Below, piece by piece: positions 24,780-63,691 of a DNA stretch of 64,000 nucleotides. The stretch's first letter is position 1; each line of letters begins with the position of its first letter. The position numbers were made by a program, and so were the translations under genes. The stretch lies in the NCBI GenBank assembly GCA_964252035.1, contig OZ176200.1; one strand, written 5' to 3'. This DNA comes from Podarcis erhardii (taxonomy: Eukaryota). The notes beneath the pieces were generated by a model. That model was not told where the DNA came from. It saw only the letters and a program-made list of their open reading frames with translations, and did no database searches.

Positions 24780-25900
24780 TCCCCATTGCACCAGGGACTG
24801 TACCTCTGGAACAGCTCCTCTTGGCCTCGGCCGATCACTGGCGTTTCACCCCTTTGCTTCTTCCTCCCGGGAGGGGCTCCCCCCCCCCATAGCCTCCATC
24901 ATCTCCTCTCCTCGCCCCACCTCCCACCCCGCGAGACCGTGTCCCACCGCGCACAGGCTTCTGTGCCCCGACTTCCTCCCTTCGCACATTCCGTGATTTA
25001 TTTACAGCCGGAGCCGAGTCGCTCTCTCCCCCCCCCCCCGCCCTCCAGGGCAAACAGGAGGCTTCGCCCGAAGCTTCCCGAGCGAGAGGCCGCGGAGCCC
25101 GCTTTCCTCGCCGCATCCCTCGCCCCAGCACCCCTCGGCGCCTGGGAGAGCCCCGCTCTCGGCCTGCCCTGCTCCTCCTCCACCGTCTCGGGAGGCGGCC
25201 GCGCGCTGCCCCGAGTCCCCCGGGAGGCGGCGGGAAGGTCCTTCTTCGCACAGCGCGGCCGGCGGTGGCCCCTCCTGGCGCCGCGCGCACCCGGGTGTTG
25301 CTGCCAGGCCCGCCGCCGCCTTCCTGCACGGACTGGCTCGCCGGCCAGGTGCCCGAAAAGAGCAGCTGCCTCGGCATGGAGCGGGCGGCGGCGGCGGCGG
25401 CGGCACCGGCCTCGGAGCAGGTAAGCCCGGCGGAGAGAGCTCCCCGAGAAAGGGCTTCGCGGCGGGTGCCTTTCTGCCGGCCAGGCCGGGCCCGGCGAGC
25501 ACGGACGGAGGGCACTTCCTGGCGCAACAACGCCGCGACCACTTCCTGCTTTCGCTTGCCGGGGGCTTACCTGAGCCCCGGAACCTGCTCCCCAAGCTCA
25601 TAGGACACCTTTGAGCGTCAAGAACGGAGCTTTCGAGCACGTGCAGAGCGCTGCCTGCGCCTCTGCGTTTTCTCTCCCACACCTTCGGGTGCGATTCCTT
25701 GGCCCGTAACAGTTTCGCGTTTAGAAATTGAACTCGGTGCTCCGACTCGTCTCCTGCCCATTTAAATAAATCTTATGCATTAATGCGATCCGCGCAAGTG
25801 TTCGGGTGAACAAAAACAAAAGCTCCGAAGACAAAGAGAGAAACGCACGCGCGTTGTGTTTTTAGAGAATGCAAGCACGTGTCGTCATAACAGGCTCCCT
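24780..25900. promoter_or_regulatory. CpG island promoter around PRKAG3 exon 1, possibly bidirectional
   Basis: Very GC- and CpG-dense relative to the flanks. Contains the PRKAG3 ATG exon, ETS-like cores (ACTTCCTG near 25514 and 25541), an NRF1-like element (tgcgcctctgcg near 25656) and a minus-strand donor CAG|GTAAGC at 25571. Confidence 0.85.
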
Positions 25901-36781: not shown

Positions 36782-37046
36782 GCATTATGCCACCAAAGGG
36801 AAACGTTTCTGAGGTTTGCCTCAGGAGGGAGGGGTAACTCTAGCCCTGTGGATGTCAAGCACTCATCTCAGCTCATCCTGTTACCATACTCTTCTCTCCG
36901 TGATGGTGTGTGGCTCACTCATCTGGCAGGTCCATCGTCTGGTTCTGGTGGATGAGAAGAAAACCCCGCGGGGGATCGTGTCCCTCTCTGACATTCTCCA
37001 AGCCCTGGTTCTCACGCCTGCAGGTATCGATGCCCTAAACTCTTAA
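25376..37046 (+). CDS. PRKAG3: AMP-activated protein kinase gamma-3 regulatory subunit (four CBS domains), about 524 aa
   Basis: Exons 25376-25420 ([15 protein letters not shown], Kozak ggcATGG), 27135-27174, 28181-28833, 30669-30750, 31062-31120, 31355-31400, 32742-32796, 33211-33337, 34058-34223, 34894-34931, 35532-35678, 36930-37046 (TAA). All GT-AG and phase-compatible, 1575 nt in total. Motifs: [63 protein letters not shown], and the gamma-3-type end [11 protein letters not shown]. Exons 1-2 rest on splice signals and phase rather than strong homology. Confidence 0.96.
28198..28449 (+). repeat. Degenerate coding 21-bp (7-aa) tandem repeat x12 in PRKAG3 exon 3
   Basis: [84 protein letters not shown]. 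Confidence 0.8.
33653..33878 (+). mobile_element. Tc1/pogo (Tigger-like) MITE, copy 2
   Basis: Same TIRs and internal sequence as copy 1; 3' TA flank intact. Confidence 0.88.
35094..35138. repeat. (GT)n microsatellite
   Basis: Directly visible GT run in a PRKAG3 intron. Confidence 0.95.
36746..36781. repeat. (AAT)n microsatellite
   Basis: taataataa run about 150 nt upstream of the last PRKAG3 exon. Confidence 0.95.
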
Positions 37047-43957: not shown

Positions 43958-46900
43958 TCATGATACTGGAAGTGGGAAGAATTTGCCCGTCTTCTTGGTG
44001 CGGGAGGCATTCCTGGCAGAAGACAAAACAGGAGAGGGAGACCCCAGAGTGGACATCTATGGCAGCCCCCTTGGCAGCAGCCCCTCTGGGCAGGTGAAAG
44101 GAAGGTCAGAGAACCCCCACAACATGTAGGAGCCTCCACACCTCAGGGGCATGGGCACATGGACAGCTGTGGCAACAAGAGTTTGATAACCCTTCCCAAA
44201 CCAACCCAGTCCTTATCCAAGGATGGTAGCAGCACTCAGTAGCAGCAGGGTTGGGGAATCTTTTTCAGCCAGAAGAAAGCCTTCCCTCACAGGCAACCTT
44301 CCTGGTGTGGCAAACTAGTGGTGAGCAGGGCCGGAAGCAAAAGTGGTCAGAGCAGCCGGTGTGACTTATCATTGACTATCTTTGGACTATGTTCCAGCCA
44401 TACGAAAACCAGAAGTTCTCTCACACACACCCAAACAGACACTTGCTACTTCTCCATCCAGACAAGCAGAGCACCATCATAGTTTAACAGCACATTCCAG
44501 CTAGGCAAAAGCAGGGAGTGGAGCAGTATCTGTGAGGGGAAAGTCCAGGGAGACCCGACAAGGAAGCCTTGATGGCTGCATTCAGCTCACAGGTCCCCCT
44601 CCCCTGCAACCCCACAAAATGCACCCCAGGCAGCTGTGCCAGCTCACTTACGAGGGTGGGAAGGTGGTCCCAATGCAGTCCCATAGCTTATTAGGGAGAC
44701 AGCCACCTCCTGGGCTCATCTGGATGGCGCTGACTTCAGGGGGAGTCAGAGGAAAGAAGATCTGGTCTGTGGGTGGAAGGTTGGAGGGAAGTATTAGGTC
44801 CAGCTCCCGCCCCCCCCCCCGTCCTTCGGAGGATCACCAAAACTGAGTAAGGATGGGGCTCCTATATTTCTTCCTCCCCAAGCCACCCACACTTCAATTC
44901 ACCTTGCTCATTCACGACGCTGGGCTTTTGCACCGAAGGCACCAGGTTTTCCTGCTCTTCTCCCACAAAATGTCTCCAGAACGAAAGAGGCAGTGCTAAG
45001 AGATTGGCAACCACCTGCAGGGGAATGGAATCATGTTAGCTTTTGTCTGCCGCCTAATCGTGAAAATTCTTCCCTATCTGCCCCACCCGGCCTTCATTAG
45101 CTGGTTCTTGCTTATGTTCCACAGAGGTGTTTATCTGCCCATTGTTTTCACATGGATTCAGTTCTCATCATAAATTTATTGACAATGTGGTAGAGATGAG
45201 AGCTTGCAAAAACACTCTCACAAGCCAATATTTGGAACAAAGCATTCAGAATAATTCTCTGAACTCTGCTACTTGAGATGCAAGAGCTTTAATTAAGCAG
45301 CAGTCAGTTACGCCCCATTTGTTACCTTGACTTTTGACTTTCTCACTGCAGCTTTCATGCTCTTATGAAATTTTATGGAATAAGGAAGCCATGGCACATA
45401 GCAAGGGCTCACTTGCTGAATTTTGCACTGGACTAAAATTAGCGTTTCTGGGAATCTCAGCTCCCCCCCCACCTTTTAATATAAAAAAGCAAGTTTCTAG
45501 CCCGTAAGACAAAAATAAAATATTAAAAATCTGTTTAAAATGCTTGGCAAAGTCTCAGAAGTAAGCAGGATTTCCCACAGTCAGGACTTTGTTCCTGCCT
45601 TTGTCACAATTAGCAGAAGCATTTCTCCAAGCTCAGCGTACCTCCCCACATTCCACTGAGTTCACAAGAGCTACCCTGGTGCAACAAAAATAATCAATCC
45701 TCAGTTCCAAACTACATCAGGATTTTGCTTGATGTACAGTCTGAGCATTGTGCAGTCTTTCCTGCAGGCCCACAGAGGGTCAGAAAAAAATTAAATACTG
45801 CACACAAGTAACAAATACAGGTTGCGTCTGTTACCAGGCATTGACGTGGTGTGTCTTCCAAGATGATGCGTGGGGAAGGGCTAGGATTACTGTGCCCAAC
45901 TAGAGTCGGTCCAAAGATACGTGCTAGGTTGTGCCGGTCCATTCGACACTCAGGGCTCTGCATGACCCTAAGGATAGAGAGATGGATCCATGGAGTCAAA
46001 GGCCAAAGGCTAAAGCAGAATCCTTCTAACCCAAAGGTACAAAGCCCAGCTATATCCATAACATTCAGGGTGTCCATAACATGGATGGTGGGCATCACAG
46101 CAGGGTCAGAAACCACGGTTCATGCAGGCCACACAATGGGTGAAGCAACCAAGCCCACAAGACAAGACAAATTGCAGGGGACAGGATTAGACAAAACCCA
46201 TCATTAGCAGAAAATGTATTCCTGACGCCCCTTGATGCAACAGATATCCATTATGTTTGTTGCTTTAAAGTGAGAAGTGCATTATCTGATGTAGCAAATA
46301 AGTGTCCCAAAACAGGTTTCTGAACAGTTACTGTGGATCCAATCAATGAACAGAAAAGAGTGGTGTTCAAACCTATTGTGCAAGACAGGAAAATACCCAC
46401 AGTAGCAAGTGGTGCAGCCAGCACTTTCAACAAGGATTGATGATGGAACAATTGCCAGATACTTATCTGCTTGCCCTTGTACAGAGTAAGAAAATTAAGA
46501 AAAGGAAGACCTTTATGGAATGAAATGTAAAGGCCTCTGCCTTTACAAATGGGGGAGCAAATTCACAACACTCCTAACATGCAGAAACAGTATTATGTTG
46601 TTTCAAAGGAAAATACATGGCTTGAACATGCAGTGTCACCTTTTGCCAAGGCAGAAATCTCCACCAAGTTGAGGGAAAGTTTTGCACATTTTAGAGTCCC
46701 AGGTATCCCCCTTCAAGCCCTCACCAGCTTACCTATGGAGATGCAGCACCAGAAAAGCCAGTGTGTCCCTATTGGCCAGAGGCAACTTCATCACAACATG
46801 GCAGAGTGCAGTCTGGCGAGCAGCTTCATCTGGAATTTCTGGGTGGGAAGAAAATAGTGCTATGAGGTTGGGGGCGGGGGCGTTTCATTACTACCACTCC

Positions 46901-49900
46901 AGAAAAGGCACTTTCCACCTACTGGCTTGTCCAAACTCACCTGAAGCACGCAGGAAGGCAGGGTGCAGGGCAAAGGTCACTAGAGGTTCCTTCAGGCTCC
47001 TCAGAAAGTCCTTGAGAACTCCACAGATCACATTGACATCAGCCACCTGGTCCAGTGAGGGAAGCGCTCCTCGGGCACAAAGCAGCTTGCGCTTCCATTC
47101 TCGAATGAGGTGCTCTGAACCTGGCACTCTGTATAGCCCAGCCTGCAGATCACGAGGAGCAAAAGACAAGAGAAACAGATGCACACACAAAAGCTTGTAA
47201 CGGCCACTAAGGTACAGTCCCAGCTGGCACCTCAGGCCTGAAATCATTACCACTAGTCAGAAGCATCTGCCGGCACCATTTTGTGGCCTTGCCTCTTTCT
47301 GCTTTTTAAAGATGTCACGGCCATTTTGTGTAATGTCGCACCCTCATGGATACTTTAGGACTTGAAATGTGAAAGACAGGGCCTTGGATTGGGCCTGGAA
47401 TTATATAATTAACTCCTGTGGCTGGATAAAAACAGGCACTGGGTATGCAAACCCATCTCCCACCACCAGTAAGGAGGGTAGCAGAGGCAGAGAGTTCCAG
47501 GCCTAGGGAGAAGGTCAGAGCAGGCAACACCAACACAGGATGTCCAATGAGAAAGCTCAGAGCATGCAGAATGCAAAGAACGAGGGGACAGATAAGGAGA
47601 ACAGCAGCAGCAGCAGAGATCAGAAGTAAGATTATGAAGAGCCTAAAGAGGCTGAGAGGAATTTGGGGAAGAAAAAGTAGCCAGTGAACAGAAATATACA
47701 AATATTAAAAATGCATTAGAAAACCAAACAACCAGCCAAGATGAAAAAGGAAAAGAAGATCAGAAGTCAGGAGAAGCAAGGGAACTAAATGCAACACCTC
47801 TATCCCAACAGCTAGCATAGGGGAAGTAGGGCAAAAAGAAAAATATCACAGAAGTTGTGCAGTGACAGAATTAGATGTGGAAATCCAGGTTGATGACAGT
47901 TAAGAGTAAACTATCAGCAGCTCAACCAGCCTTTCAGAGCCCCACAGCTGCCCCCCCCCACAAACGCACTTACCTCCTTCAGGCCACGCCTTTCCACTTG
48001 ATTCACACACTGGATGACTAGTGGGGGCACCAGAGGTGGGGTGGAGGGTGCAAAATCTGCCAGAATGCCCTGAGAAGACACGGGGAAGCTTAGAAGAGGC
48101 AGCTGGTAGTCGGGGGTATACTGCCTGACAGTGGAGGAAGAACACAGGCATTGTGGCTAGTAGCCATTGATCATGGCTAGTAGCCATCAATGTGGATTGG
48201 GGGGGGGGGGAAACAGCTCAGCCATACCTGCCACACACAAGTCACCCCAGCCTCCCGAATTGCTCTTGCCCCCGGCAAAGCCGGCAGCACTGCAATAAAA
48301 GCCCCATGAGCTCCCATCCCAGGGAAGCGTCCTCACCTCTCTCGCTCTGGGGGAGGCAGTCGGCCTGCACATGGACGGGCTGCGTTCTTTGCACTCAGGA
48401 TGCACTACAAGTTGGCAGGGCCGACATTTCAGGGCCATCTTCCCAAAGCGCAGGCGGGATTTGCAAACCGCACACGACTCCAGGCTGATCATCTTGTAGC
48501 CAGGGAAGAGGGAAGAGCATTAGATGAGCACAGCAGAGATCAAGAGGAAAAAGACCACAGGCTTCCCATAGCTTGCCCCTTTGTACAATATCCCTCTAGC
48601 TTGAATTTGTCCAATGGAGCTCTTGGATTTATTTATTGCATTTATACACTGCCTTTCTGCCAAAGCGGTTGGCAGTTTTAAAACATCAAATAAATGATAC
48701 AAAAAGCATAGTTGGCCCAGGGGTAGGTGGGGAGGGGAGAGTCCAAGTGGCACAGGCTCTGGTGCTGCCCCTGCCTGCCCCCTACCCCAATCTCTTCTTC
48801 ATGGAGCTTTTTTTGGAGGTATATTCCACACCATGTTACTGGCATGATCCTTAGTTCCTTAGTGGTGGATTTGTACTGGAGCACCCACACATTGTTCCAC
48901 TTTATCAGCTATCCTGAGATGCTTTCAAAATGTTACTCCATGATTGCCACCAGGGCGAGCACTCTTGGGCAAGACAGAAGCAGAACTTTTGTGGTATGCA
49001 GTGTTACAAGATTTTAACAGGAAGTTATGAGACTTGCACAAAATTGGAAACAAATGCAGACGGTTGGCTTAGGAGAACCCAGTCAACCTATCATTAAGAG
49101 CAGTGTTTCCCAACCTTGGGCCTCCAGCTGTTTTTGAACTACAACTCCCATCATCCCTAACTAGCAAGACCAGTGGCCAGGGATGATGGGAATTGTAGTC
49201 CAAAAACAGCTGGAGGCCCAAGGTTGGGAAACACTGATTAAGAGCACTTGAAAGCATCCCAGCAGATAAGCACTCCAGCTGAGGTCGTTGCTGAGAGGCA
49301 GCCCTGTTCTTCTTTTCTCACCGTCTTGGAAGTAAAGTGGTGCTCTTGGAGGGGTGGTGTTCCCTGTGTGGGAGAAGGAGAAAAGGGGTCCTGAACACCC
49401 ATCAACTCAGTCCTAATCTTTGTGCCAATGGTGTCACTCTCAGCCTGGCTATTACCGGTACTTCTGCCTGACCCTTCACTGCTGCCCCAGAAGGAAGTGA
49501 CGTCTGTGGAGAGAAGACCACACATCAGAGACACATTTAAAGGCATGGAAACTTTCGTCCAGCATTCAAGCTGGCACCTCCCAGAAGGCACTGTTGGATC
49601 TTAGCACTGGTCTACCTACTTCCATCTGCAGGCTCCCATTTGGAGTATGACACCCTGGAGGTGCAGAAGCACACAATCAGGAGCTAGTGTGACTGCTCTG
49701 TGTGGACAGAGTTGGCCAGGAACCTGGGCTAAGGTGGGGCAGACAACTTGCTCAATGCCCTCCAGTAGTCCTGGGCTTGGGAGCATGGTGGCGGTCAACT
49801 GTCCAGAGGACAGACAGGTGGGAGAATGGACTCAAAAGTTTGCAAACCAGACCCCATCTTTAAAGGAGGGGGAGACAAGCCAAATAATCTCCCTGCTCCT

Positions 49901-51452
49901 CATAAAGCCATTCTTGCTATTCTAGCTCCTATGAATACATACCTCCACATCTGAGATCACTATTAAACCATTTGGACACACTCAGGGTCTGCCTGCCAGT
50001 CTCTTGCACATAACATGGCTCGTGGTTTTGTGGTTCCACCACTACTCCTCCTCTAAACCAGCACTGCCTCCTAACATGTTTGGACTGGACACCCTTTCTT
50101 CAAAGGAAAGGCATAGGTACCCTGAGCATGTACTGAGTGGATTCCCCATCCCCACTTACAACTAAGGAAAACGGGATGGCGATGAGGAGCCCAGGCAGAA
50201 CAGGATTTTTCGTCCCTTCACTGTCCCCAACTCCCTTTACAGCATTCTGGAATTTTGGAAACTGAAAAGCTTATTGCAGCATATTCTCTAGTTCTACTGC
50301 TAAACCTTCTGTCAACACTCATTACCTAACCATGTCTGCCTTCAGAACAGGCCAGGCCACACCCAAAAAAGGAGGAGGGAAGAGGCACCTGAGCGTGTGG
50401 ACAGGCAACGTCTCTGCTGGGATCGGCGACGGGGCACCACAGCAATCGGGGGCAAAACGTGGGCAGTGGCTCCGGATCTCAGAGTCGCCACAGACATCTT
50501 ATTGGCCTGGCAAGATTGGAGGGGAGGGGCAGAGAATGATGAATGGCAGTCTGGATCAAACCCCTTTAAATGAAGGATGCAGGATTATTCTCTCTCACAC
50601 ACACATACACACGTTCAAAGGAATTTTAACCCTAAGAGCTTGCAGAACATAAGGGAAACCCCGTTTTACTTGAAGCTTCATTGCCCTGTTTGATCACGCC
50701 ATGTATAACACATACCCTGCTGTGCAATCTACCACATTGCAGTATCTTTTTATCAGAGACATTTATTATCAGAGCTGATTTTGCAGTGGTGTCAAAGGTT
50801 GCAGGCTGGGTCTTCCCTTGTACAGAGATACGCACAAGGGCATCGCCAGGTACTTACACTTGGAGGCGGAGGTGCCACAGATGTTTGTGCAGATTTGGTT
50901 GTTGCCACTGGCTGAATCAGGGGCACGAGGGAGGAGCACTGGAGGAGAGAAACAGGTGTGAGAGCAACAGGAAGACAGATCCACGTAATTCCGGGTGAGG
51001 GAAGCTCAGCACAAATTGCTTGCCATTTTTCAGACTATCAACAAGACAGAGCAAAGTAAATGGTGGGATACAGACGAAGACGTTTTCAAATAATTGAATG
51101 TGTAATTAGAATTGCATATGGGTGAGGAAGATTTATCTCCTCCTGTCCAGTTGTGGTCTCTGATGAAACAGATGTTTGAGGCATGCACACAGAAATAATA
51201 TAGGACGGGTGCTTCAGTTCTGGAATATGTGACAGGATGCTTCCCAGCCCCACCTTCACTTACCCCTTTGTCTCTGCCTTTGAGGGATTTTATCACTTCC
51301 AAATCCTGGAAGAAAACAGAAAAGGAAAGCTTGAGAAAGGATGTAGACACATTTGTAGCTCATGGGCTACTTAAAATGAAGGCCCACCCTGAGCTTGAGC
51401 ACATCTTACCACTTCTTCCAATCTCAAGTTTTGAACTATGTGTATACATACA

Positions 51453-51486
<34 letters not shown>

Positions 51487-54345
51487 CATACATATGCATC
51501 ATTTTAAAAGCTTCTGCAGATAGCCACCTGTACCAGATTGTATCTACATCCCAGAAGCCTCTTCAGCATTCACAGTAAGCCCACATGTTTCAATGGCTAT
51601 AAGAATCTGTCTGCTTGCTTTCATCAACAACACACGTGTCTTACTAAGGTTCCATATTCTTGTTTTCTGCAAGAAGCTACCCTAAACCCTGGCATTCTGG
51701 CTACAGTCAAATAGAATGCTAGTGTGCTTTTAGTTTGTTGCTGGTTTAATTTTATTTTTTAAAAAAGTTGTAATTGTTTTTACTTTATTATTTATGTAAG
51801 GTATTTTGAGCGTTGTTGTTTTTTTACCATCAAGTAGTATACAAATTTTATTAAATAAATAAAATAAGTACAGAGTTGCCTGCAATCTGCATTAGGAGGT
51901 GTGCCTGCCTCCATCATAATTAACTTTCCAGAGGAATTTGTAAACATCCCTGTTTATCCAGGCATTTGGGGGATGAGGAATAGTTCCTGGCAACCCCATG
52001 ACCATTGGATGGAAGAATGTTTTGAACTGTAATTGCTTTTAGAACGTTTTGAACTGAAGCTGTGTTCATATGTTTTTAACCGTTTTAGAATGTTTTTGCT
52101 TAATTTTAAAGTTGTGTATCTGTTTGTTGACCTGGGGAGGAAGAGCGAGATATTAATGCAATAAGAAATACGCAAATAAACAATGCAACTAAATTACATC
52201 TGTCACTGTATCTGGTCTCCAAACAATCTGTGCTCTCATTAGAACAAGGTGCCCATTTCTCACCCCAAAACAGCAAATAAATGTTTGAACCTATGAAGGG
52301 TGTTGACAACTTGCTTTACACAAATACGCACCAGTTAGGTCAAAGGCTGGTTTAGTCCTGCTCCTCCTCACATAGTTTAGTCTTTTTAAAAACGGCAAAG
52401 CTATTTTTGCTTTCCCTTGTTGTTGCTAGAATAGTTGCAAGACTACTCTGGAAATCTGGGGAGAAGGGGGAAGGTATGATGGTGCTGCAATACATGCACT
52501 TTGCAATAGGTGCTCCCCACAGCTAGCTTTCCCTAGTTCAAACCAAATTCTATTAAAATGTTGCATAACTGGTTCTCTCCCCGTAGAATAGAAATTTTTA
52601 CTGTTTTGGGCATACAAGTGCCACAAGGGTGCTTTCAAACTGTTGCTCTTAATATGTCACATGCGTCTTCTCCCTTCGGTGACCAAGCATAATTCCCCCT
52701 GAAAGAGTATCATATTTTTTCGTGTATAACATGCTCCAGTGTATAAGACGCCCCCTATTTTGGGGGACTCAAAATTAAGAAAATTGGGGGGAGATTGCCA
52801 AGGGTTGTTAAGCTCTTTTTTGGGGGGAACTGCCCAGAATTGCACATACACTGACAATCTACCCAATTGCCACTGTGGCAGCCAATCACCAAAAAAACTC
52901 GCCACAACCACCAATCAGCCGCCCTATCGTCACTGAGAAACTGCAACTCGTGGCAGCAGCCAATCGCACGTCCCCCCCTCGGCACTACTCATGTATAAGA
53001 CGAGCCAAGATTTTTAATATAATTTTTAAAGTAAAAAAAACCCTCGTCTAACACACGGGAAAATATGATACTTTGTTTCAAACCAACTCCCTTCCACATA
53101 TATTGCCTCTGTTCATATTGGTGTGTATCTCTGAAAACATACGCCAACATGTAGGGCCTGTTGCAGTAGTATGTGTGGCACCATCAATTTCAAGTGTGAA
53201 GTCTTGGTTTCTGCTCCTGTAGAGCGCAGAGATCTCAGTCCACAGTAACCACAAGAGTCTGACTGTGCCCTGGAGCTTTCAGTTCTGACCTGGCAAGCCT
53301 GGGAGGAAGGGATGCTTACTTACCACTTCGTCATCTGAGTGATCAAAGCTGATGTCAGATATGATTGAGGCCCCAAGTCCTTCCACTGTAGACGGCCTAC
53401 AGAGAAGAGTAACACAGGGGCTGTATCACAAATAACAGCCTCATATCACGCCTGTCTCTCCCACTCTTGCTATATAGCTCAGTTCTTCTAATCCAGTATC
53501 TTCTCCAAACACCCATCATTAAAAAAAAATAAAAATTAAAAAATTTAAATGTGGGGATACCATTGTGGGAAAGCTACATTTTCTTTTCATTCAGTCCCTT
53601 TCTTTGCAAGGACCCCATGATGAAAGTGAGACAGTGGTGGTGAAAGAAACATTACTGCTATTTAATCAAGTTTATTGTTCATTGCTATTTAATCAAGTTT
53701 ATTGTAAGTTTATCATTGTAGCCCAAAGCCATGACAAGTTGTAATTACACTTGCTGTGTTGTTCTGGCATTGTGGGTTTGCATATAAACTAGTCGCCTAT
53801 CATGATTGTTATTTTCGGTATGCATGTCAAGGGGCCCCTTCAAACCTGTAGAATTGGCACTTGTTTTTTTATATACTACAGTGGTACCTCGGTTACATAT
53901 GCTTCAGGTTACATACGCTTCAGGTTACACACTCCGCTAACCCAGAAATAGTACCTCAGGTTAATAACTTTGCTTCAGGATGAGGACAGAAATCGTGCTC
54001 CGGCGGTGCAGCGGCAGGAGGCCCCATTAGCTAAAGTGGTGCTTCAGGTTAAGAATAGTTTCAGGTTAAGTACGGACCTCCAGAACGAAGTAAGTACTTA
54101 ACCCGAGGTACCACAGTACTTCTCAATCATAGGAGCCAACTCCTAGGGGCCAAAGGGTCTTTGCACTCCCAATAAAATAGCTCATGGGCATTGCCAGTGT
54201 GTATGCACTGTGTCATGTGATGAACCATGCAGGGTAGGGCCTACTTGGGCCCCCCAATATTTTATTCAAGTTGGCACCCCTGTTCTCAATGTGGATATTC
54301 ACACCAGTACATCGGTATTTAATTTGAAAGCCTTTTGCCCCCAAA

Positions 54346-54421
<76 letters not shown>

Positions 54422-57400
54422 GGAATGATTTTGCTTATGGTAACAACTACCTGCACATCTGAATCACCAGAAACTTTCTGCAAATAGTAATAATTTGACT
54501 CTACCGATTATTGGAACCAGTAAAGCTAAACAGCAGGAATTAGGCAACTAAGCTGAGAGATAAAACTGATCTGCTGTGTATTTGGGCTGTAGGATGTATA
54601 TACAACTGTTTGATTGAATTTCATTTATTGTATGATTTGTGGCATGTGTGAAACCAGAGATTTACATATGTCCATTTTTAAAAACAAAAATATCCAGACA
54701 GGACTCAGGGATTGATTTGCTTGCCTGAGAGAAGCTGCAATATCAGCTGTCTTAAGTACTCCCTTGCCACTCACCACTTGCCAGGCAGCAGGGTGCTGTG
54801 GCTGAAACGTGGCCTTTCTAAAGCCGCCAGGGCTGATCGCTGGTCCTCATTGAAAGGACTGATTTGTGAATCAGCCATCAGGTAGTCATAGATAAGCTGC
54901 AGCTTGCGCTCCTGAGAGGGATGAAAAGGGGTGAGGGGTGAATAGAACAATGGAGACCCTGTTGGAATGAAGAATGTAGCAGTCTTCAAGTGCAGCCACT
55001 TTGCAGCTGTAACCATGTTCAGACTGGTACATCCCTCCTTAGGGTGGGGAGCACCTAGTTCTCCCAAGCCAACCTAATGCAAGTGAACTGTTTTTGCCTG
55101 GGATGCATGTCCAGGACTGCAACTGACTATGCACTAAATACATCCAAGTTCTGTGCTCCCAAAGTCCAAAATTCTGCAGTCTTAATTTCATGAGTAAATT
55201 TCCACCTGCTGCATAGCTCAGTGTCTAAGCTACTGAGTCACATCAGCTCCTGGCAGCTTTTATGAGACCTGAAACAGCACAGCTGTAGTTGTTATGGTGC
55301 AGCAGTCTCTTGTCCATCTATTGTGCCAAACACTAGCTTCTATTCGGGTTGTGCTTAAAACTTCCTTCTTGCTCCATCTCTTAAGTTCCTAAGTTCTGTG
55401 GCAGCACCTCCCCGCTCCAGGTTTAGATATTATTCTTCGCAGCATGCATCACTCTGACACAACACAAACCATTCACCTACTAGGCTTTATCGCCCTAAGA
55501 ACATAATATGACGGGCATCATTATTTGGTTGGAATCTTATTTGCTCTTGTTTTCTGCTGTTGCTTTTCTGCATATGAATTTTACTTTTCACTGTTACCCA
55601 CCCTGGAAGTGCTTTTTGGCAATGAAGAGTGGGATACAGGTGCTTAAAGTTAAATAGTCTTGTTGATCAGACCAAAGGTCCTGTATCCTGTTTCTCAGAG
55701 GGTGCCTCTGGAAAGCCTAGGCCTCTGGATGGGATAGCCCCCTCTTGCTATTGTTCTCCCACCAATTGGTTTTCAGAAGCTTGCTACCTCAGATCCTGGA
55801 AGCAGTACAGAGCAACCATGACAGACAGCAATTGATAGCCTTATACATAATGAATTTATCTTTAAAAGCCATATAAACTGGTGGCTGTCGCTAAACCTTA
55901 ATTAGGAGCTTGTGAAGAACTACGTAGGGAAGTGCTATAGCTCAGTGGTAAAGCATCTGCTTTGTATGCACAAATCCTTGGCATCTCCAGGTAGGGCTGT
56001 CATTGCCTCCTGGCCCCTGGAAAGAAGATGCTTCCAGTCAATGTAGACAAATACCAAGCTAGATGGACCAAAACCCTGAACTCAGTACAAGGCAGCTTCC
56101 TTATTGTCTGTCCTGAATCAGCTTCATTTAATGGCCTCAGATTCTAACATGAGAAGGGGAGAAAAACTCCCCCCATCTACTTTTCTCCACCATGCCCCTC
56201 CAAGAACCTGCTTTTCCAGCTCAGCTTCTGCCCGGTGCCTTTTCTTCATCTCCACCTCCACTTGGTTGCGGGCGTGTTTCAACTTCACTTCCAGGACTGA
56301 ACATTCGTACTCCGACTGGCGCAGCTTCTCCCTTGTTCCCTGCAAGTCGCAATCCAGGCAGCAGCATCGCTGGCGCATCCCCTCGAGACATTTGGCAATC
56401 TGGAGGCAGTCTAGAGAGGGCAGAAACAAGCATTGTGACATCCACAAAGGTTCTCCATGTGGCAACAGCAATGAAAAGAGAACTAACTGTGTGGAGTGGA
56501 CTCTTTCTAAGTCAATGAGTCATTCTATTTTTATTATTATTTTTATTACTTTTCCAAATTTATAAAAAGAAATAACGTTGCAAAACACAGAACAAAAGAA
56601 AGCACATTACAATACAAAATAAAAACATAAAAAACAATTATTTCTTCCAAGATCCAATTTACCTTACATTGTTAGCTGACTTCCTTGAATCCCCCCAACT
56701 GAATTTCATTGCATCACCTTGTAACAGTTCTCCAAAGTCATATTTCTATTAAAATTAACTTCTTTCATTTACTATCCTCTTCTCTTTTATTAGTATTCTA
56801 ATCCTTAATGTTTTACAACGCATTTTTATTCTAGTCCTAAGCCTATTTGTTACTTCCAAGTGACTTCTAATTATCTTATATTACAATATTTAGCTAGATA
56901 TTCTTTAAATTTCTTCCAATCTTCCTGGGTCTCCTCTTCTTTCTGGTCCCGGATTCTTCCAGTCAGGTTGGCCAGCTCCAAAAAGTCCAAAATCTTCATA
57001 TGCCATTCATCTATTGTTGGCATTTCTTGTGATTTCCAATTTTTGGCCAATAAAAGTCTTGCCGCTGTGGTGGCATACAAAAACAGCCTAACATCTTTTT
57101 GGGGCAGTTCCAATCCTATTATTCCAAGTAGAAAGGCTTCTGGTTTCTTAATAAATGTATTTTTCAACATTTTTTCCAATTCATTATATTTTCCCCCAGA
57201 AGTCTTTCGCCTCAGGACACGTCCACCACATATTGTAAAAAGTTCCTTCTTTTTCCTTGCATTTCCAACATTGGTTATCATTTGTATGATACATCTTTTC
57301 TAATTTCACTGTTTTAGAACAGTATATGCAGTAAACTTAACCCCTTTCTTCCAAAGCCTTTCCCAATCTTCCAACATTATATTGTGTCCAACATCTCTTG

Positions 57401-60400
57401 CCCAATCAATCATCACAGATTTAACTTGTTAATCCTTTGTATGCCATTCCAACAATAAATTATACATTTTAGAGACATTTTTAACATTGGTATCTAACAA
57501 CTCTGTTTCCAATTTGGATTTTTCTGTTGCAAAACCATTTTTCTTATCAAGCTTATACAGTTCATTAATCTGATAATATTGTAGCCAGTCATCCAATTTA
57601 TCCTTAATTTGGTCAAATGGACTTAATTTAAATCCTTCATTATCTTCCAACAATAAATCAGCATTTTTCAGCCATTTACTCTCCATATTTAACTTTTTCT
57701 GGGCCTTTGCTTTCATTGGTGAAAGCCACCTGGGTGTTTTCCTTTCTAAAAGATCTTTATATCTTATCCACACATTATAAAGAGATTTCCTGATTACATT
57801 ATTTTTAAAACCTTTGTGGGCCGTTATCTTGTCATACCATAAATATGCGTGCCAACCAAATACATTGTTGAATCCTTCCAAATCCAACACATCAGCGTTA
57901 TCTAGTTGAATCCATTCCTTGATCCAGCAGAAAGTCGCAGCTTCAAAATATATCTTCAAGTCTGGCAGGGAAAATCCCCCTCTTTCTTTTGTATCTGTTA
58001 ATATTTTATATTTAATTCTGGGTTTTTCCCCATGCCAGATAAATTTAGACAATGCTTTCTGCCATTCTTTAAAACATCTTACGCTGTCAATAATTGGAAT
58101 AGCTTGGAATAAAAACAACATCTTTGGCAATTCATTCATAGTAAATGAGTCATTCTAGAAGAGCTCAAGAACAGCTGAAGACAGTGGCTACAAATTACGG
58201 GGGTGTCATTTTATTTAACACACTTTATATGCTGCTTGATTGTGAAAATCTCTTAGTGGTTTACAAAACAACAACCACCATGTTGTCATCAAAGAAAAAC
58301 CCCTGCCAATGCTGATGCTTAGAGGTGATGCAGTTATATTCCTGAAATCTCAGCTCCTTCAGAACTGCCAACAATGGTTTTTCTCACGCGACCCACCATA
58401 GTACCTTTGACTTCCTGCTCCATTTTGTGGCATGTTACAATGACCACAAAAGGGCTATCTTAAGGCAGTGATTGTGAAACCATCGCCCTCCAGATGCTAT
58501 TGAACTACAACTCCCATCATTCCTGACCATTGACAATGCTAGCTGGAGCTAATGGGGAGTTTTTAAGAAAGCAGCGGAGCCATTTAAGCAAATGACACAA
58601 GCAAATACAAAAAAAGGGTTGAAATTAAACCCCCTCTTGGACTAGACAATGAATTGGATTGGAGAATCCCAGAGAACTCTTATGACCTGAGCCCAATTAT
58701 GTGATGACACTAACTGAGAAAACCCATATAGTCATCCAGAATCTTGCCACCCTGTTTTTGTCCTGCTCAGAATCAGCATCACCTTCAGATGTCTGGTGGT
58801 GGTAGTGCCTGGATAATATGTCCTCAATAGGTCCACCTCCTTTTTGCTGCTGCCACCTCTGCCCATTTACTTGCCCTTTAAGCCCAAACTAAAGAGCCAC
58901 CCAAAAGAAGTGGGCAGGGCAAGCCAAGCAGAAATATTGCTCCTCCTCCCTGTCATTGGTTGCTTCATTTGATGGGATCAGGGCCTGCATGTCCCATTTT
59001 GCCACTTGAGGCAAAACTGGAGGTGCCACCCAGCCCTGTTGCCACCACTGTGCCACCTACTTTCTACATGGACACTGGATAGCAAAGGACCCTAGTAGGG
59101 CAGCAGAGGGGAGAATTTTTCAGCAAAAGTGCCACATTCCCTCATAGGTACCCTTCTGAGGGCCGCATGTTAGTAATGGGCAAGGTCAGAGACATAAGAG
59201 GATGGAGGAACAGGTGTGGTCACCAGCCTTTGTACGGGAGAAAAGGTAAAGGGTAAAGGTACCCCTGCCCGTACGGGCCAGTCTTGACAGACTCTAGGGT
59301 TGTGCGCTCATCTCACTCTAGAGGCCGGGAGCCAGCGCTGTCCGCAGACACTTCCGGGTCACGTGGCCAGCGTGACGAAGCTGCTCCGGCGAACCGGCAC
59401 CAGAGCAGCACACGGAAACGCCGTTTACCTTCCCGCTACAAAGCGGTACCTATTTATCTACTTGCACTTAAGGGTTCTTTCGAACTGCTAGGTGGGCAGG
59501 AGCTGGGACCGAACGACGGGAGCTCACCCTGCCGCGGGGATTCGAACCGCCGACCATGCAAGTCCTAGGCGCTGAGGTTTTACCCACAGCGCCACCCGCG
59601 TCCCTTGTACGGGAGAAGTCAGAGGCAAATAAGGGACATGGTCAGAGTTCAAGGGTATATGCCAGGCAGGCAAAAGCACTTGAGTGTGGTGATAGTTAGT
59701 TCAGTCCAGGAATAGTCCTGAGGGCAAGACAGAGGGACCTGGAAGGCCGCATTTCGCCTCTGGGCCTGAGATTGCCCACCCCCTCTAGCAGGATATAAAC
59801 AAAGACAACCCTGGAACCTGTTTCCATGCACGGGTTAGTGCCAGGACGGACACACAAACTATTTTTGTAACACAAAACCAACAACACCGAGAAATGCTCA
59901 CAAACACAAAACAAAGCCAGGCCACAAATCAAAGGAAGTGGGAACTGTTGTCATGGCAATGTGAGCCCAAGAATGAGCAGCAGGGAGGTGCTTTTATTCA
60001 GTTCAGTAACAACATAATTACAAGCAATCTAAATATATCAGCTAGCTTAGTACTGTAATGCCATTAAAATCCAAATAATTAACAGCTACATACTTGTCAG
60101 CCAAGCCCAGTCTCTCTGCATTGACTGGGCAGAACAACAAAAGGTTGTTCTGTTAACACTTACGGTACTTCTTAACTGGGCAATGGGTGAGAATGCAGTT
60201 TGCAAGTTTTCTGCACTTCAAATAAAATTTGTATTTTACAATAGAACATCGTCTCAAAAATCACTGAAGATTCATGGAAGGGGTGTGTGTCAGGCTGCAG
60301 CCCCCAAGGCATTGTGTCCATTGCTTAATGCACGTCAAGCGCCATTAGCAATATGTTCAGATTTGTCAAAGACAAAGGATGGAGAACCTTGGCCAACCCA

Positions 60401-60483
60401 CCTAGTTCGATGCTGCTGTTGAACTCTATGAGGCTCAAGAGCTGGTCCATGTGGCGCATCAGCTGCGGGTACAGGCGATTCAT
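43958..60483 (-). CDS. Rac GTPase-activating protein 1-like (RACGAP1/MgcRacGAP/CYK-4 paralogue): coiled coil, C1 domain and RhoGAP domain, about 630 aa
   Basis: Minus-strand exons: 60483-60402 (MNRLYPQLMRHMDQLLSLIEF), 56410-56208 (VKLKHARNQVEVEMKKRHRAE), 54911-54775, 53396-53324 (SDISFD), 51305-51264, 50938-50858, 50506-50389, 49503-49322, 48492-48337 (C1: CAVC..CRPC..HPEC..C), 48069-47974, 47142-46941 (GLYRVPG, LKDFLRSLKEPLVTF), 46838-46733 (LPLANRDTLAFL), 45967-45835 (NLARIFGPTLVG), 45014-44903, 44766-44652, 44012-43958 (KTGKFFPLPVS*). All GT-AG and phase-compatible, 1893 nt with no internal stop. The sequence is too divergent from canonical RACGAP1 to assign that symbol. Confidence 0.93.
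49101..49236. mobile_element. Palindromic hAT (Charlie-like) MITE
   Basis: 136-bp near-perfect inverted repeat CAGTGTTTCCCAACCTTGGGCCTCCAGCTG...CAGCTGGAGGCCCAAGGTTGGGAAACACTG. 8-bp target-site duplication attaagag at 49093-49100 and 49237-49244. Confidence 0.92.
51445..51492. repeat. (CATA)n microsatellite
   Basis: catacataca run in an intron of the RACGAP1-like gene. Confidence 0.93.
52710..53068. mobile_element. Non-autonomous Tc1/mariner-superfamily (Tc2/pogo-like) element
   Basis: Imperfect TIRs tcatattttttcgtgtataa / aacacacgggaaaatatga, TA on both flanks, and internal GTATAAGACG repeats. Confidence 0.7.
53879..54116 (+). mobile_element. Tc1/pogo (Tigger-like) MITE, copy 4
   Basis: Same TIRs and body, with TA flanks. 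Confidence 0.88.
54349..54418. repeat. Compound (GT)n(GA)n microsatellite
   Basis: Directly visible. Confidence 0.95.
56528..58143 (-). mobile_element. 5'-truncated L1-clade LINE (ORF2 C-terminal region, frameshifted)
   Basis: ORFs 57429-58139 (LPKMLFLFQAIP..FIWHGEKPRI..GGFSLPDLKIYF) and 56871-57281, a CCHC knuckle (CWKC..HMWWTC) in another frame, and an A-rich tail. 14-bp target-site duplication aatgagtcattcta at 56514-56527 and 58144-58157. Confidence 0.92.
59243..59604 (-). mobile_element. Sauria SINE, full length, CpG-rich variant
   Basis: Same architecture as the copy at 14767-15133 but with diagnostic differences. 13-bp target-site duplication ttgtacgggagaa at 59230-59242 and 59605-59617. 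Confidence 0.92.
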
Positions 60484-60999
60484 CCTGCTAAAGATACAAG
60501 GGTCGAGAGGGAAGCAAAGGCACTCTGGGCTTCAAAAACCAGTTAAGGGAGTGAAGAACAGGCAACGCCCAAGTATGTGTAGGCCCTAGCCCCGTAGGGG
60601 CCCAACACCTTTAGTGTATGCAAAACACTAATAAAGAAAAAGCTTCTCCTGAGCATGTACAGAGAGAGTCTTTGCTATGTCACTTCCACCCAACCCCTGC
60701 ACTTCCAGAAATGAGGCCTGATATGCCTTGAAGAGGAGGCCTAGGAACCACTTTACATTTTCTTTTTCTAAGAAAACATCCTCAGCAAATCTATATATTA
60801 CAGAAAAGGCGCGGGGTGGGGTGTGTGCAGGAGAACGTCTTACTGTATATCCCACTTACATGTTACTAGGGCATAGAGACTCCAGTCAGGCGAATATGGA
60901 AACACACAGACTGCTCGCCGAACAAATTAAGAGCATCAGTGAATCAGCACCTGAGGTTACAAGCCATATTACTGCAGCCACCCACACAAAGCATCCTCC

Positions 61000-61760
61000 G
61001 CCATCGAAGAACCGCTGGGTGAGCCGCGGCGTGTTTTAAGCAACCCGCCTACTTAGAAAGCGCCACCCATCGCCGGGATTAAAGCCGGGAGCCAATTCGG
61101 CCTCTTTTTAAGGAGGGACAGGGATCTCGGCAACAAACCCCCCCTCCGCTCTCAGTCGAGGGAAAGCCTTTCTTTTCTGCTCAGCTACCAGCGGCCCCTC
61201 CAAAGTTGTTGCGCCTTCTCCGCCCCCTCTGGCTGCGGGTGGCTAGGCCTCGTCCTTAGCAAAGATGGGGGTACACTGGCTCTTTAACAGGGTGAGGGGG
61301 TTTCCCTCACCCGCCGCCCAGACCTGAGCGGCAACGCATCCCAAGCCCATCGCTCCAAAGGCAGTCGGGGCGTAGGAGAGTTTCTCTAGGTGGAGATTTC
61401 TGCGCCACTTTAAGAATAGCGAGCGCGTCTCCAGGGGGCTGAAAGAGCACGTGCGGGCCCCATCTCCTCCGCTACCTCCCCCGGCTTGGAACAGTTGCGC
61501 CACGAAGCTTCCGTGACCTTCATGAAGCCGGGGGAGGCTCCATTCCGGAGCAGGTGAGCGCCACCTTTTCGCCTATACCTTTAGGCCCAAGATGCTCGCA
61601 TTACCGAGGGCGTTCCTCCTCGCGAGGGGCCGCTGTCCATCCATCTGCACTTTCGGCATCTGCTCCCTGCAGGCAATACCCGTCCGCCCCCAACCACGTG
61701 CACATTCCCCGGCCACTCAAGAGATCGCGCCGTGCTTCTGAGGAAGGGGCCTGCAGCCCG
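61000..61760. promoter_or_regulatory. CpG island, probable promoter and non-coding exon 1 of the RACGAP1-like gene
   Basis: CpG-rich stretch 0.5-1.2 kb upstream of the ATG exon. Minus-strand donor CGG|GTGAGG at 61311. Confidence 0.8.
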
Positions 61761-63691
61761 TGAAACTTTGGCTTTACTTCTTTTAAGGTGGTGCTAGGCT
61801 CCTTGATTTCATTTTCCCATCTCCAGCGTACCTGGGCATTTTGTTCAGGGGTGTGATTGGGTCAGGGGTCCTGGAATCAGTACCCACAGCGATTCTGCAG
61901 GGGAGCTTGCCACTTCCTGGGATTTCTGGTTTGTTGGACTCGTGTGTCTTCCTTCGACGTTCAGAGGCACAGCACCTTCAGCACATCCTTCCCTGTCCTT
62001 CCTTTAGCATTCCTATCCAGCGATAACTGGGTCCCTCTGGTACTCTCTCCATTCCACTAGGTTTGGATCATGCCCACTATAGCTACGCTTGCCTTTAAAC
62101 CCCAGCACTCCAGTTTGCCCATCTTGGCTCTTGAGTATTCTAGCAAGGCAAGTCGCTGCCTCTTAACCTAACCTCACATGGTTGTGGGGATTAAATAAGG
62201 ATGGGAAGAAGTAGGTACATCATATATTGAGCTCCTTGGAGAAAGAGGTAGGAGATGATGGTGGTGGTGATGATGATGATGACGATATAAAAATGGTTTT
62301 TCTCTCCCAAAGGTCTCAGGCACCTGCACTTTCATTACCTAGTTCTATTCCACCCCTATTTGGGCAATATCAAACAGTTTCACTCCCATCTTTAAGGATG
62401 ATTTATTCTGGACCGGATGCCCCTCAGCGCCTGCCAGCTTTCCTCCAGCCATCTTTTCAGCTGCAGAGCTATCCTAATAAGGGTAGGCCAAGTCCAAAGG
62501 AGGAAAGTGCTGTGAGTGGCAAACACTGGGCTGGAGGAGCAGGGTGCTTCATCCAGACTAGCAGTGTTCAGCTAGCAATGCCACACTCTTGAAAGCAGAA
62601 AGTGAGAGGCCTGGCAGCCCTCTGGGTCTGAGAACATTGTCATGGGTGCAGCTGCCCGCCCCCCTAACATGAAGACAGCCCACCCCCAACATGAATCCTG
62701 GCTATGCCCACGAACATTGTGTACAGGGTTGAAAGCCAGATCCCACTTACAATAATAGGGGCCATTCCAGGATTATGGGAAATACTTAACTATTACATTT
62801 TGATATGGCTGGAATTCGTTTGAAAATTAAGTGGGATTAAGTTTAAAAAACAAATAAGAAATATATTGTGGCACATGGGTGGAAAAACCTTTTCAGACCA
62901 AAGACTGCTGAGTGCGTGCACAAACACACCAGGAACGATAGCTCCATCAAAAAAAGAAGATTGCATGTTGTAGGGTAGAAGCAAGGTTTTTAATAGCCAC
63001 CACCAAGCTGTGACAATTTCATTCTTAAACACCTGAGTATTGGGAACCCAGGGAAGAGAAAAGTCGATGCAATCAGTCAGCTAGTTCTGAGGGACACTGG
63101 CTAACAGTAACTACTCCTACCCTGCCCCCCACTCCTCAGATCCACCGAAAGAATCAATCAGGCACAGAATGTGGTGCAAAGCTTTGCAAGGATTCACAGG
63201 AGAAGATTGCAGAGCAATCTGATACCAGTAAATGGTATCAGAGGTGATTTGGGTACAGGGAGATCCACCAGATGATCAGCCAAGGCACAAACAAGGTTGA
63301 TGTTAAGTGCTTAGTCTTCACAGTCTATCCAGACGAGGTTCAGGAGTGGTGATCAAGGTTTGCTTAAAGCATGGGCAACCCAGTGTTTTGGTCTGAGGGC
63401 TACATTCAGAGTTGGCCAACCCTTTGTGGGCCACGTTCTAGCAGCCATGAGTGCCAAAATGGCCACCAAACACAGACTCACCCCACATGTATACAAACTC
63501 AGTACACAGCACACACTCTCACTCGCATACGCACAGAAGAGAAACGAGACATCCGGGGCTTGGTGGAGAGCTTTGAACCTCTCCTCTTCAGCCCAGCATT
63601 GCAGGGAGGAAGGTGGGGCAGATGGACCACTGCAAATAGTCTTGGAGGGCTTGATCCAGTCCATGGGCTTGTGACCCCCCCCCCCACTGCC

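Follow-up and report, generated by a model that had tools for sequence, protein, structure and literature searches.

RACGAP1L, an intact and divergent RACGAP1-type gene of the lizard Podarcis erhardii, is a putative ohnologue of RACGAP1 that is retained in many jawed vertebrates outside mammals

A Second, Full-Length RACGAP1-Type Gene in Podarcis erhardii

The 64,000-nucleotide stretch of the Podarcis erhardii genome that was analyzed here (GenBank assembly GCA_964252035.1, contig OZ176200.1; referred to as the window) contains on its minus strand an intact gene of the RACGAP1 family, which differs from the canonical RACGAP1. RACGAP1/CYK-4 and KIF23/MKLP1 together form centralspindlin, and RACGAP1 is treated as a single-copy essential component of cytokinesis. 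To our knowledge, nearly all functional work on RACGAP1/CYK-4 has been carried out in mammals, flies, and worms. The gene of the window is very probably functional and the lacertid orthologue of the gene that NCBI pipelines label “rac GTPase-activating protein 1-like” (named RACGAP1L here, or L for short), an ohnologue of RACGAP1 for which we propose a role as a CYK-4-type GTPase-activating protein (GAP). As far as can be read from its sequence, RACGAP1L is an intact and selectively maintained gene whose product has a GAP site that looks competent, a C1 module, a dimerising-type coiled coil, and an ECT2-docking motif.

RACGAP1-type peptides were already visible in stop-free stretches of positions 43958–61500 before any modelling. 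For the gene model, the GAP exon (window 46942–47142, minus strand) was used as a seed and compared with 1.84 billion representative proteins. The closest full-length match, a python orthologue, was mapped onto the window by tblastn, and the junctions were solved so that the reading frame was kept, splice signals were present, and the product agreed with the reference. This yielded a multi-exon gene with 16 coding exons, in which all introns are of the GT-AG type. The coding sequence (CDS) runs from the ATG at 60483 to the stop codon at 43958 and comprises 1893 nt or 630 aa with neither an internal stop nor a frameshift, which agrees with the original prediction of a stop-free gene of 16 exons and about 630 aa, down to the end coordinate of 43958. 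Along its full length, the deduced protein shares 97% identity with the “rac GTPase-activating protein 1-like isoform X3” of Podarcis raffonei, and its junctions are essentially the same, whereby 19 residues and one junction codon differ between the two. Since the P. raffonei protein was annotated independently, this identity and the shared junctions argue that the gene model is not due to chance. The window protein furthermore shares 92% identity with the proteins of Lacerta agilis and of Zootoca vivipara, and the exon lengths agree with those of the orthologues from Zootoca, turtle, penguin, and anchovy as well as with those of the canonical Anolis RACGAP1.

The domain content of the deduced protein is that of a RACGAP1 family member. 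The three motifs that had been predicted are present: the coiled-coil motif VKLKHARNQV is encoded by exon 2, a complete set of C1 zinc ligands by the end of exon 8 together with exon 9, and the arginine finger of a RhoGAP domain (GLYRVPG) by exon 11. Both domains gave Pfam matches on a single stop-free stretch each (C1_1, E 2.3e-8; RhoGAP, E 3.2e-13), and the C1 domain directly precedes the GAP domain. The C1 ligand pattern, H-x12-C-x2-C-x12-C-x2-C-x4-H-x2-C-x7-C, is contributed by the eight residues H300, C313, C316, C329, C332, H337, C340, and C348. Among solved structures, human RACGAP1 was the best match to the GAP exon (58 bits, about 52% identity), followed by Myo9b (31 bits). The coiled-coil exon and the exon for the C-terminal part of the GAP domain, each searched alone against Pfam, gave no match, being either too short or a non-domain region.

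RACGAP1L and Canonical RACGAP1 Form Sister Clades in Jawed Vertebrates

A maximum likelihood tree was calculated from 57 proteins and 646 alignment columns under LG+C20+F+G4 with posterior mean site frequencies (PMSF), for which canonical RACGAP1 proteins had been gathered with a lamprey and an Anolis query. The window protein falls into a clade of 24 L sequences (support 99/99), which is the sister of the clade of canonical gnathostome RACGAP1 (22 sequences, 100/100). Thus, the gene belongs to the sister clade and not to the clade of human-type RACGAP1. Each of the two clades spans cartilaginous fish to sauropsids in agreement with the species tree, and the amphioxus, echinoderm, coral, and nemertean proteins branch outside both. 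In the tree the duplication is therefore older than the gnathostome radiation and younger than the split from amphioxus, which is in line with the suggestion, made before this analysis, that the gene is an ohnologue derived from whole-genome duplication. Because the lamprey and hagfish copies are weakly placed (support 86–89), the first and the second round of genome duplication (1R and 2R) are indistinguishable as its source. A duplication confined to sauropsids, represented by a tree in which the sauropsid copies of both kinds were forced together, a group that was named after the tree had been seen, was rejected (log-likelihood, lnL, lower by 228.8; approximately unbiased (AU) test, p 4.9e-109).

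Divergence between the two genes is considerable. The window protein is 37–39% identical to the canonical RACGAP1 of Anolis, wombat, beaver, and coelacanth, and the canonical proteins of lizard and mammal are 81–83% identical to each other. About 35 species, counted by the names in the search lists, have one protein in each clade. These include twelve squamates (Anolis sagrei, A. carolinensis, Sceloporus, Pogona, Phrynocephalus, Liasis, Candoia, Notechis, Crotalus, Tiliqua, Varanus, and Sphaerodactylus), and both genes are likewise present in coelacanth, lungfish, caecilians, and salamander. The two genes map to separate chromosome records in Anolis sagrei, and to contigs that differ in size in Liasis, Candoia, and Tiliqua. 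A canonical RACGAP1 was also found in the teiid Salvator, which belongs to Lacertoidea, and in the tuatara.

The exon plan is shared between both genes. Exact CDSs were obtained by projecting annotated proteins onto the loci of Zootoca, Anolis, turtle, penguin, and anchovy, and onto the canonical locus of Anolis. With the exception of the Anolis L model (15 coding exons), all CDSs that were compared have 16 coding exons. Exons of 203, 96, 106, and 133 nt are identical in length between L and the canonical Anolis RACGAP1, a further exon measures 202 and 199 nt, respectively, and the length of the 203-nt exon is the same in all L orthologues compared. All 15 introns of RACGAP1L are kept at the canonical positions. 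Since the introns are retained and the two genes lie on different chromosomes in Anolis sagrei, RACGAP1L is neither a retro-copy nor a tandem copy. The CDSs of Zootoca, Anolis, turtle, penguin, and anchovy are free of stops and frameshifts and have canonical splice sites. Taken together, the tree, the exon plan, and the gene neighborhoods described below support RACGAP1L as a putative ohnologue of RACGAP1/MgcRacGAP/CYK-4 that dates from before the jawed-vertebrate radiation.

Occurrence and Naming of RACGAP1L

A protein database search listed RACGAP1L in dozens of squamates, turtles, and birds as well as in caecilians, and cluster look-ups added the copies of coelacanth, lungfish, newt, axolotl, a frog, rays, two teleosts, gharial, and a side-necked turtle. 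RACGAP1L is thus annotated in squamates, turtles, crocodilians, birds, amphibians, lungfish, coelacanth, rays, and a few teleosts. The named high-identity representatives in the exhaustive search were all sauropsid, and the fragments found in Logan were closest to the bird, turtle, and gharial copies. There was no mammal among the RACGAP1L matches listed; a mammalian copy should have outranked the caecilian sequences in the list. With regard to the expectation that the gene was kept in reptiles and lost in human, the reptilian retention and the lack of a mammal among the matches thus stand, whereas the retention proved to be far wider and extends from rays to birds. Within the same set of exons, gene size varies about eight-fold, from 4.7 kb in penguin (L005:10001-14655) to 37 kb in the ray, with 10.6 kb in turtle and about 17 kb in the lizard in between.

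The 97% match to the annotated P. raffonei protein means that the gene is already part of public automated annotation, and NCBI models indeed carry the RACGAP1-like name that had been anticipated for it. The names vary between records: chicken (XP_015145596), Lonchura, Calypte, Columba, Cuculus, Pogona, and others have the paralogue under the simple name “RACGAP1”, and Anolis carolinensis has both genes under that name, one entered as “isoform X2” and the other as “isoform X3”, with the two contigs differing in size. In the full-text literature we found no paper that describes a vertebrate RACGAP1 paralogue, and the text matches to “RACGAP1-like” referred to invertebrate or unrelated genes, consistent with the earlier statement that no functional description was known. 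RACGAP1L is therefore known to annotation pipelines and is at the same time an undescribed member of a known family.

Gene Neighborhood of RACGAP1L

In the window, RACGAP1L is flanked by a gene with CBS domains (PRKAG-type) on the plus strand, which ends at 37043, and by the final exon of a minus-strand P450 gene (63838–63695), which was identified by collinearity with the annotated Zootoca locus. These are the PRKAG3 and CYP27A1 neighbors that had been proposed. Collinearity with the Zootoca locus extends through the entire window; at that locus, the order is P450 gene, RACGAP1L, and, in convergent orientation, the CBS-domain gene, and the same order was found in Anolis sagrei and in the gecko Heteronotia. 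Thus, the slot between CYP27A1 and PRKAG3 is old within squamates. By comparison, the convergent downstream gene has GMPPA-type domains (NTP_transferase and GMPPB_C) in Malaclemys (a turtle), Mobula (a ray), and Spheniscus (a penguin). The CYP27A1–PRKAG3 position is therefore specific for squamates, and the position next to GMPPA is the older one.

Further neighbors were found in single species. In penguin, a gene for a 3489-aa Ig-rich protein lies beyond the GMPPA-type gene, which we take to be the counterpart of SPEG, a gene that adjoins GMPPA in human. The first exon of an ASIC-family gene (Pfam ASC, E 1.9e-22) is located about 8 kb upstream of the penguin RACGAP1L on the opposite strand, that is, head-to-head, and since it is only about 50% identical to chicken ASIC1, it belongs to another ASIC gene. 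No ASIC exon was found within 10 kb upstream of the turtle gene nor anywhere in the window, so that penguin is the one species in which the ASIC adjacency was observed. In anchovy, the upstream neighbor is TMEM169, a further gene of human 2q35. In the human map, 2q35 contains SPEG-GMPPA-ASIC4 as well as PRKAG3 and CYP27A1, and 12q13 contains RACGAP1 and ASIC1 head-to-head together with PRKAG1 and AQP2/5/6. If this map holds, the pair RACGAP1L/ASIC4 mirrors the pair RACGAP1/ASIC1, which would be a stronger argument for paralogy than PRKAG3/PRKAG1. The gene of the window, with its CBS-domain and P450 neighbors, lies outside the 12q13-type block (AQP2/5/6-RACGAP1-ASIC1). Coelacanth racgap1 is reported to adjoin the aquaporin cluster, and the king cobra gene to adjoin AQP6 (PMC4245216), which fits the canonical block. 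L and canonical RACGAP1 accordingly stand in paralogous blocks together with other ohnologue pairs (GMPPA/SPEG, ASIC, and PRKAG neighbors). In the squamate ancestor, RACGAP1L probably came to sit between CYP27A1 and PRKAG3 from an older GMPPA/ASIC position that would match human 2q35.

On the canonical side, the convergent neighbor of RACGAP1 in Anolis sagrei is a 260-aa DUF1295/ICMT-like gene (L004:32982-39775), which is not known to us from the human 12q13 block.

Conserved Sites and Selective Constraint

For the comparison of individual sites, 113 proteins of the paralogue and 114 canonical proteins were used, both sets being rich in birds. The arginine finger (97%) and all eight zinc ligands (96–97%) are conserved among the 113 L proteins. 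There are 137 positions that are near-invariant in both clades and 40 that are fixed differently. The motif KLKHARNQV is about 90–99% conserved in both clades, and the coiled-coil core KLKHARNQVEVEMKKRHRAEAELEKQERKLQL is at least 90% conserved within L and close to the canonical sequence. The coiled-coil core, the C1 domain, and the GAP domain constitute the conserved parts, with 58–66% conservation within tetrapod L and 54–58% between the clades. In the N-terminal helix, L retains the hydrophobic pattern E-x-x-F/Y-I-Q-I-A-R/K-x-F-E. The equivalent of human S157, within S-D-I-S-F, is kept in the window and in the L consensus and agrees with the site pattern D/E-x-S-hydrophobic; S157 is the primary Plk1-dependent docking site for ECT2 (Burkard et al., PMC2680336). 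At the arginine finger, L has RVPG where canonical gnathostome RACGAP1 has RISG, and as RVPG also occurs in lamprey and amphioxus, the paralogue keeps the older state.

Selection was estimated from the ratio of nonsynonymous to synonymous substitution rates (dN/dS) by the Nei–Gojobori method (NG86) with a bootstrap of 300 resamples. The ratio amounted to 0.47 (bootstrap 0.30–0.75) between the window and Zootoca, at a dS of 0.07 with 46 nonsynonymous and 29 synonymous codon differences, to 0.26 (0.21–0.34) between the window and Anolis, and to 0.34 (0.26–0.41) between turtle and penguin. It was significantly below 1, a value that was reached in none of the resamples. As a local control, a PRKAG3 stretch of 111 codons gave a ratio of 0.08 in the same lacertid pair. 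By region, the lacertid pair showed a ratio of 0.95 in the C1 domain and above 1 in the tail, both from very few substitutions. In the tree, the path from the duplication node is 1.7–3.2 times longer for the paralogue than for canonical RACGAP1 of the same species. Judged from these ratios and branch lengths, RACGAP1L is under purifying selection, which is clearly weaker than that on its canonical sister and on its neighbor PRKAG3.

Comparison With Known Systems

RACGAP1L has the same domain order as canonical RACGAP1, namely an N-terminal helix, a coiled coil, a patch of serine and acidic residues, a basic linker, an atypical C1 domain, a RhoGAP domain, and a tail that ends in FFxSP. Also common to both are the plan of 16 coding exons, the arginine finger, the zinc ligands, KLKHARNQV, and the S157-type Plk1/ECT2 site. 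RACGAP1L differs from it by RVPG in place of RISG with S387, by the lack of equivalents of S164 and S170, by weak conservation of the first 55 residues, by its location in another chromosomal block, and in that no mammalian copy was found. The chimaerins (CHN1/CHN2), which are the next-best solved structures after RACGAP1, resemble RACGAP1L in having a C1 domain followed by a RhoGAP domain, but they lack an N-terminal coiled coil and reach 29 bits on the GAP exon versus 58 for RACGAP1.

Duplicated subunits of the core division machinery that are kept for a subset of divisions, as may be the case for RACGAP1L, are described for Drosophila Australin/Borealin-related (PMC2234246) and for Oikopleura INCENPa/b (PMC6681789). 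Australin and INCENPa/b are lineage-specific duplicates with demonstrated functions, whereas RACGAP1L is a vertebrate-wide ohnologue known from its sequence. Drosophila RacGAP84C, which exists beside tumbleweed/RacGAP50C, is a further paralogue of a cytokinesis regulator with a restricted role.

Possible Functions and Alternative Explanations

If RACGAP1L works like CYK-4, it would dimerise via its coiled coil and bind to the membrane via its C1 domain. Plk1 would phosphorylate the S157-equivalent, upon which RACGAP1L would dock ECT2, and Arg395 would stimulate GTP hydrolysis on Rho-family GTPases. In this way, it would serve cytokinesis of one kind or another as a membrane-bound Rho-family GAP and scaffold for ECT2. 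We tentatively suggest that RACGAP1L may well be the GAP subunit of a centralspindlin-like complex in restricted divisions or tissues, in addition to canonical RACGAP1, which is ubiquitous. A more far-reaching proposal, which we regard as rather unlikely, is that it belongs to a second, specialised centralspindlin-type machine, in which its partner would be KIF23, a different kinesin-6, or canonical RACGAP1 in a heterodimer, and which jawed vertebrates other than mammals would use for divisions that mammals have lost or handle otherwise. Candidates for such divisions are germline cyst and intercellular-bridge divisions or the cleavage of very large yolky eggs.

Several observations speak against such a functional, CYK-4-type gene and have to be set against the evidence given so far. 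The first 55 residues show 37% conservation within tetrapod L versus 73% within canonical RACGAP1, and 24% between the clades. Equivalents of S164 and S170 are absent from L, and because of RVPG in place of RISG there is no equivalent of S387 either. Lacertids have lost most of the basic residues of a stretch resembling a nuclear localization signal that birds, turtles, and the canonical proteins keep. The dN/dS of RACGAP1L is about six times that of the PRKAG3 stretch. The Logan fragments of orthologues are unspliced and read through into introns, and thus give no support for transcription. Finally, no canonical RACGAP1 of Podarcis, Lacerta, or Zootoca was found among the best 120 relatives of the canonical Anolis protein, where at least 15 other squamates occur. 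As the canonical squamate proteins are 89–93% alike, the lacertid ones are probably hidden inside a 90% cluster of another species. The idea that lacertids are without a canonical RACGAP1 was dropped, since 90% clustering is the simpler account.

It is nearly as likely as the centralspindlin-like role that the gene and its origin are as described while RACGAP1L has no role in centralspindlin and acts without a kinesin-6 partner. It might then be a Rac/Cdc42 GAP at membranes or junctions, act at intercellular bridges of the germline, or modulate canonical RACGAP1 as its partner in a heterodimer. In CYK-4, the N-terminal region binds the kinesin, and the weight that we give to this explanation derives from the fact that just this region is the least conserved part of RACGAP1L; the linker and the tail of L are about as weakly conserved as the first 55 residues. 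The lack of several mitotic phosphorylation sites of the canonical protein and the overall evolution of RACGAP1L, which is 2–3 times faster, point in the same direction, and there is a precedent in C. elegans, where CYK-4 is reported to act independently of ZEN-4 in germline syncytia (PMC6056237). On the other hand, the coiled-coil core, the hydrophobic pattern of the N-terminal helix, and the S157-type site are all kept, which speaks against this explanation.

The remaining explanations concern the nature of the gene itself. That it is an untranscribed or decaying unitary pseudogene, intact in looks only, is very unlikely: the constraint in the lacertid pair is indeed relaxed (overall as well as in the C1 domain and tail, where substitutions are few), but the 1893 nt are free of stops and frameshifts and have canonical splice sites, as is likewise the case in five other species, every bootstrap dN/dS is below 1, the catalytic and zinc residues are kept in 113 proteins, and a 5' CpG island is maintained. 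Slightly less credible still is a relocated, fast-evolving canonical orthologue that is the sole RACGAP1 of the genome. This would account for the lacertid sequences missing among the 120 relatives; however, the tree and the AU test place the gene outside the canonical clade, twelve other squamates have both genes, Salvator and tuatara have the canonical one, and an essential cytokinesis gene is unlikely to show a dN/dS of 0.47 together with the loss of phosphorylation sites. A young duplicate of squamates or sauropsids, either segmental or a retro-copy, that was misplaced because of long branches has the lowest probability of all and can practically be neglected. The L sequences do have long branches, and those of birds and turtles a skewed composition; against a young duplicate stand the AU test, the 15 kept introns, the GMPPA neighbor in ray, turtle, and penguin, and the presence of both genes in coelacanth, lungfish, caecilians, and salamander. 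The young duplicate is thus refuted by the tree, the AU test, and the intron retention, unless an artefact of the tree was mimicked by synteny.

Gene Structure and Further Features of the Window

The coding exons of RACGAP1L and its presumed promoter region are listed in Table 1. The CpG island is the gene's own, as had been stated in the original prediction. Upstream of coding exon 1, a further coding exon offers an alternative start, which means that the gene has at least 17 exons. The peptide MLCVGGCSNMACNL encoded there corresponds to residues 1–14 of both P. raffonei isoform X3 and L. agilis X2, and splicing from 60951 to 60487 yields ...NLSRMNRL. Translation from the upstream ATG gives a form of 646 aa, which equals the NCBI isoform X3 and carries an N-terminal extension of 16 residues, MLCVGGCSNMACNLSR. 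This extension is common to the Podarcis raffonei and Lacerta agilis models and is unused in the Zootoca model, so that two start codons or isoforms are possible for RACGAP1L.

Table 1. Features of the RACGAP1L gene, with positions counted from the first nucleotide of the window
Feature	Position	Strand	Remarks
CpG island and presumed promoter region	60900–61900	-	GC content 0.54–0.61, CpG observed/expected ratio (o/e) 0.72–0.81 vs 0.25 window-wide; just upstream of and over the first exon
Upstream first exon, coding part	60951–60994	-	alternative in-frame ATG 60994, peptide MLCVGGCSNMACNL, donor GT after 60951
Coding exon 1	60402–60487	-	acceptor 60487, downstream ATG 60483; N-terminal helix MNRLYPQLMRHMDQLL...; from tblastn with python orthologue and junction solver
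Coding exon 2, 203 nt	56208–56410	-	coiled coil with VKLKHARNQVEVEMKKRHRAEAELEKQ, includes VKLKHARNQV
Coding exon 3, 137 nt	54775–54911	-	end of coiled coil
Coding exon 4, 73 nt	53324–53396	-	acidic Ser patch SIISDISFDHSDDEV; equivalent of human S157
Coding exon 5, 42 nt	51264–51305	-	conserved in Zootoca
Coding exon 6, 81 nt	50858–50938	-	linker
Coding exon 7, 118 nt	50389–50506	-	linker, basic cluster PRRRSQQRR
Coding exon 8, 182 nt	49322–49503	-	linker and first C1 zinc ligand (His300)
Coding exon 9, 156 nt	48337–48492	-	C1 domain, remaining seven zinc ligands
Coding exon 10, 96 nt	47974–48069	-	start of RhoGAP
Coding exon 11, 202 nt	46941–47142	-	RhoGAP core, arginine finger GLYRVPG, Arg395 codon 47130–47128
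Coding exon 12, 106 nt	46733–46838	-	RhoGAP (LPLANRDTLAFL)
Coding exon 13, 133 nt	45835–45967	-	RhoGAP (MDRHNLARIFGPTLVGH)
Coding exon 14, 112 nt	44903–45014	-	end of RhoGAP
Coding exon 15, 115 nt	44652–44766	-	C-terminal tail; junction agrees with P. raffonei and V. latastei proteins
Coding exon 16	43958–44012	-	tail ...KKTGKFFPLPVS and stop codon 43960–43958

Besides the exons, the introns of RACGAP1L contain several other features. A second CpG-rich patch in intron 1 (59100–59800; GC 0.56–0.60, o/e up to 0.86) may represent an alternative promoter or else a repeat rich in GC. Also in intron 1, there are two long stop-free stretches of 241 and 142 aa on the minus strand (56874–58154), which have no Pfam match and coincide with a drop of the GC content to 0.37; they look like the tail of the second open reading frame (ORF2) of a non-long terminal repeat (non-LTR) retrotransposon in the same orientation as the gene. 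The sole match in an Rfam scan of 42–64 kb was a weak tRNA-like one in intron 2 (55931–55999, plus strand; 31.5 bits at a gathering score of 29), which is probably a tRNA-derived short interspersed element (SINE) rather than a tRNA gene. One dispersed repeat occurs in two copies on the plus strand, at 33605–33860 in a PRKAG3 intron and at 53861–54101 in a RACGAP1L intron, which share translated strings, among them ...LQVT.SANPEIV.QV.NFASG. Microsatellites are located in RACGAP1L introns at 54348–54417, (GT)17(GA)18, and at 51444–51494, (ATAC)13. The strongest CpG island of the window, at 24800–25800, lies upstream of the CBS-domain (PRKAG3-type) gene.

Implications of a Second RACGAP1 Copy

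RACGAP1L as such is already present in the databases. Most jawed vertebrates outside mammals, among them chicken, lizards, turtles, salamanders, coelacanth, and rays, carry a second full-length copy of RACGAP1 that is catalytically equipped. Knock-down, knock-out, and expression studies on “RACGAP1” of birds and reptiles may thus target the wrong paralogue or be buffered by the other copy. For the comparative genomics of vertebrates, the pairs RACGAP1-ASIC1 and RACGAP1L-ASIC4/GMPPA provide a clean marker for the 12q13/2q35 paralogon, and the slot between CYP27A1 and PRKAG3 represents a dated rearrangement that is common to gecko, anole, and lacertids. The gene pair also constitutes a natural experiment on the indispensable features of CYK-4, in which the arginine finger, the C1 domain, the coiled-coil core, and S157 were kept, and S164, S170, S387, and the N-terminal 55 residues were not. 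If RACGAP1L should indeed belong to a second centralspindlin, mammals would have lost it on their stem lineage in connection with a change in a class of cell divisions.

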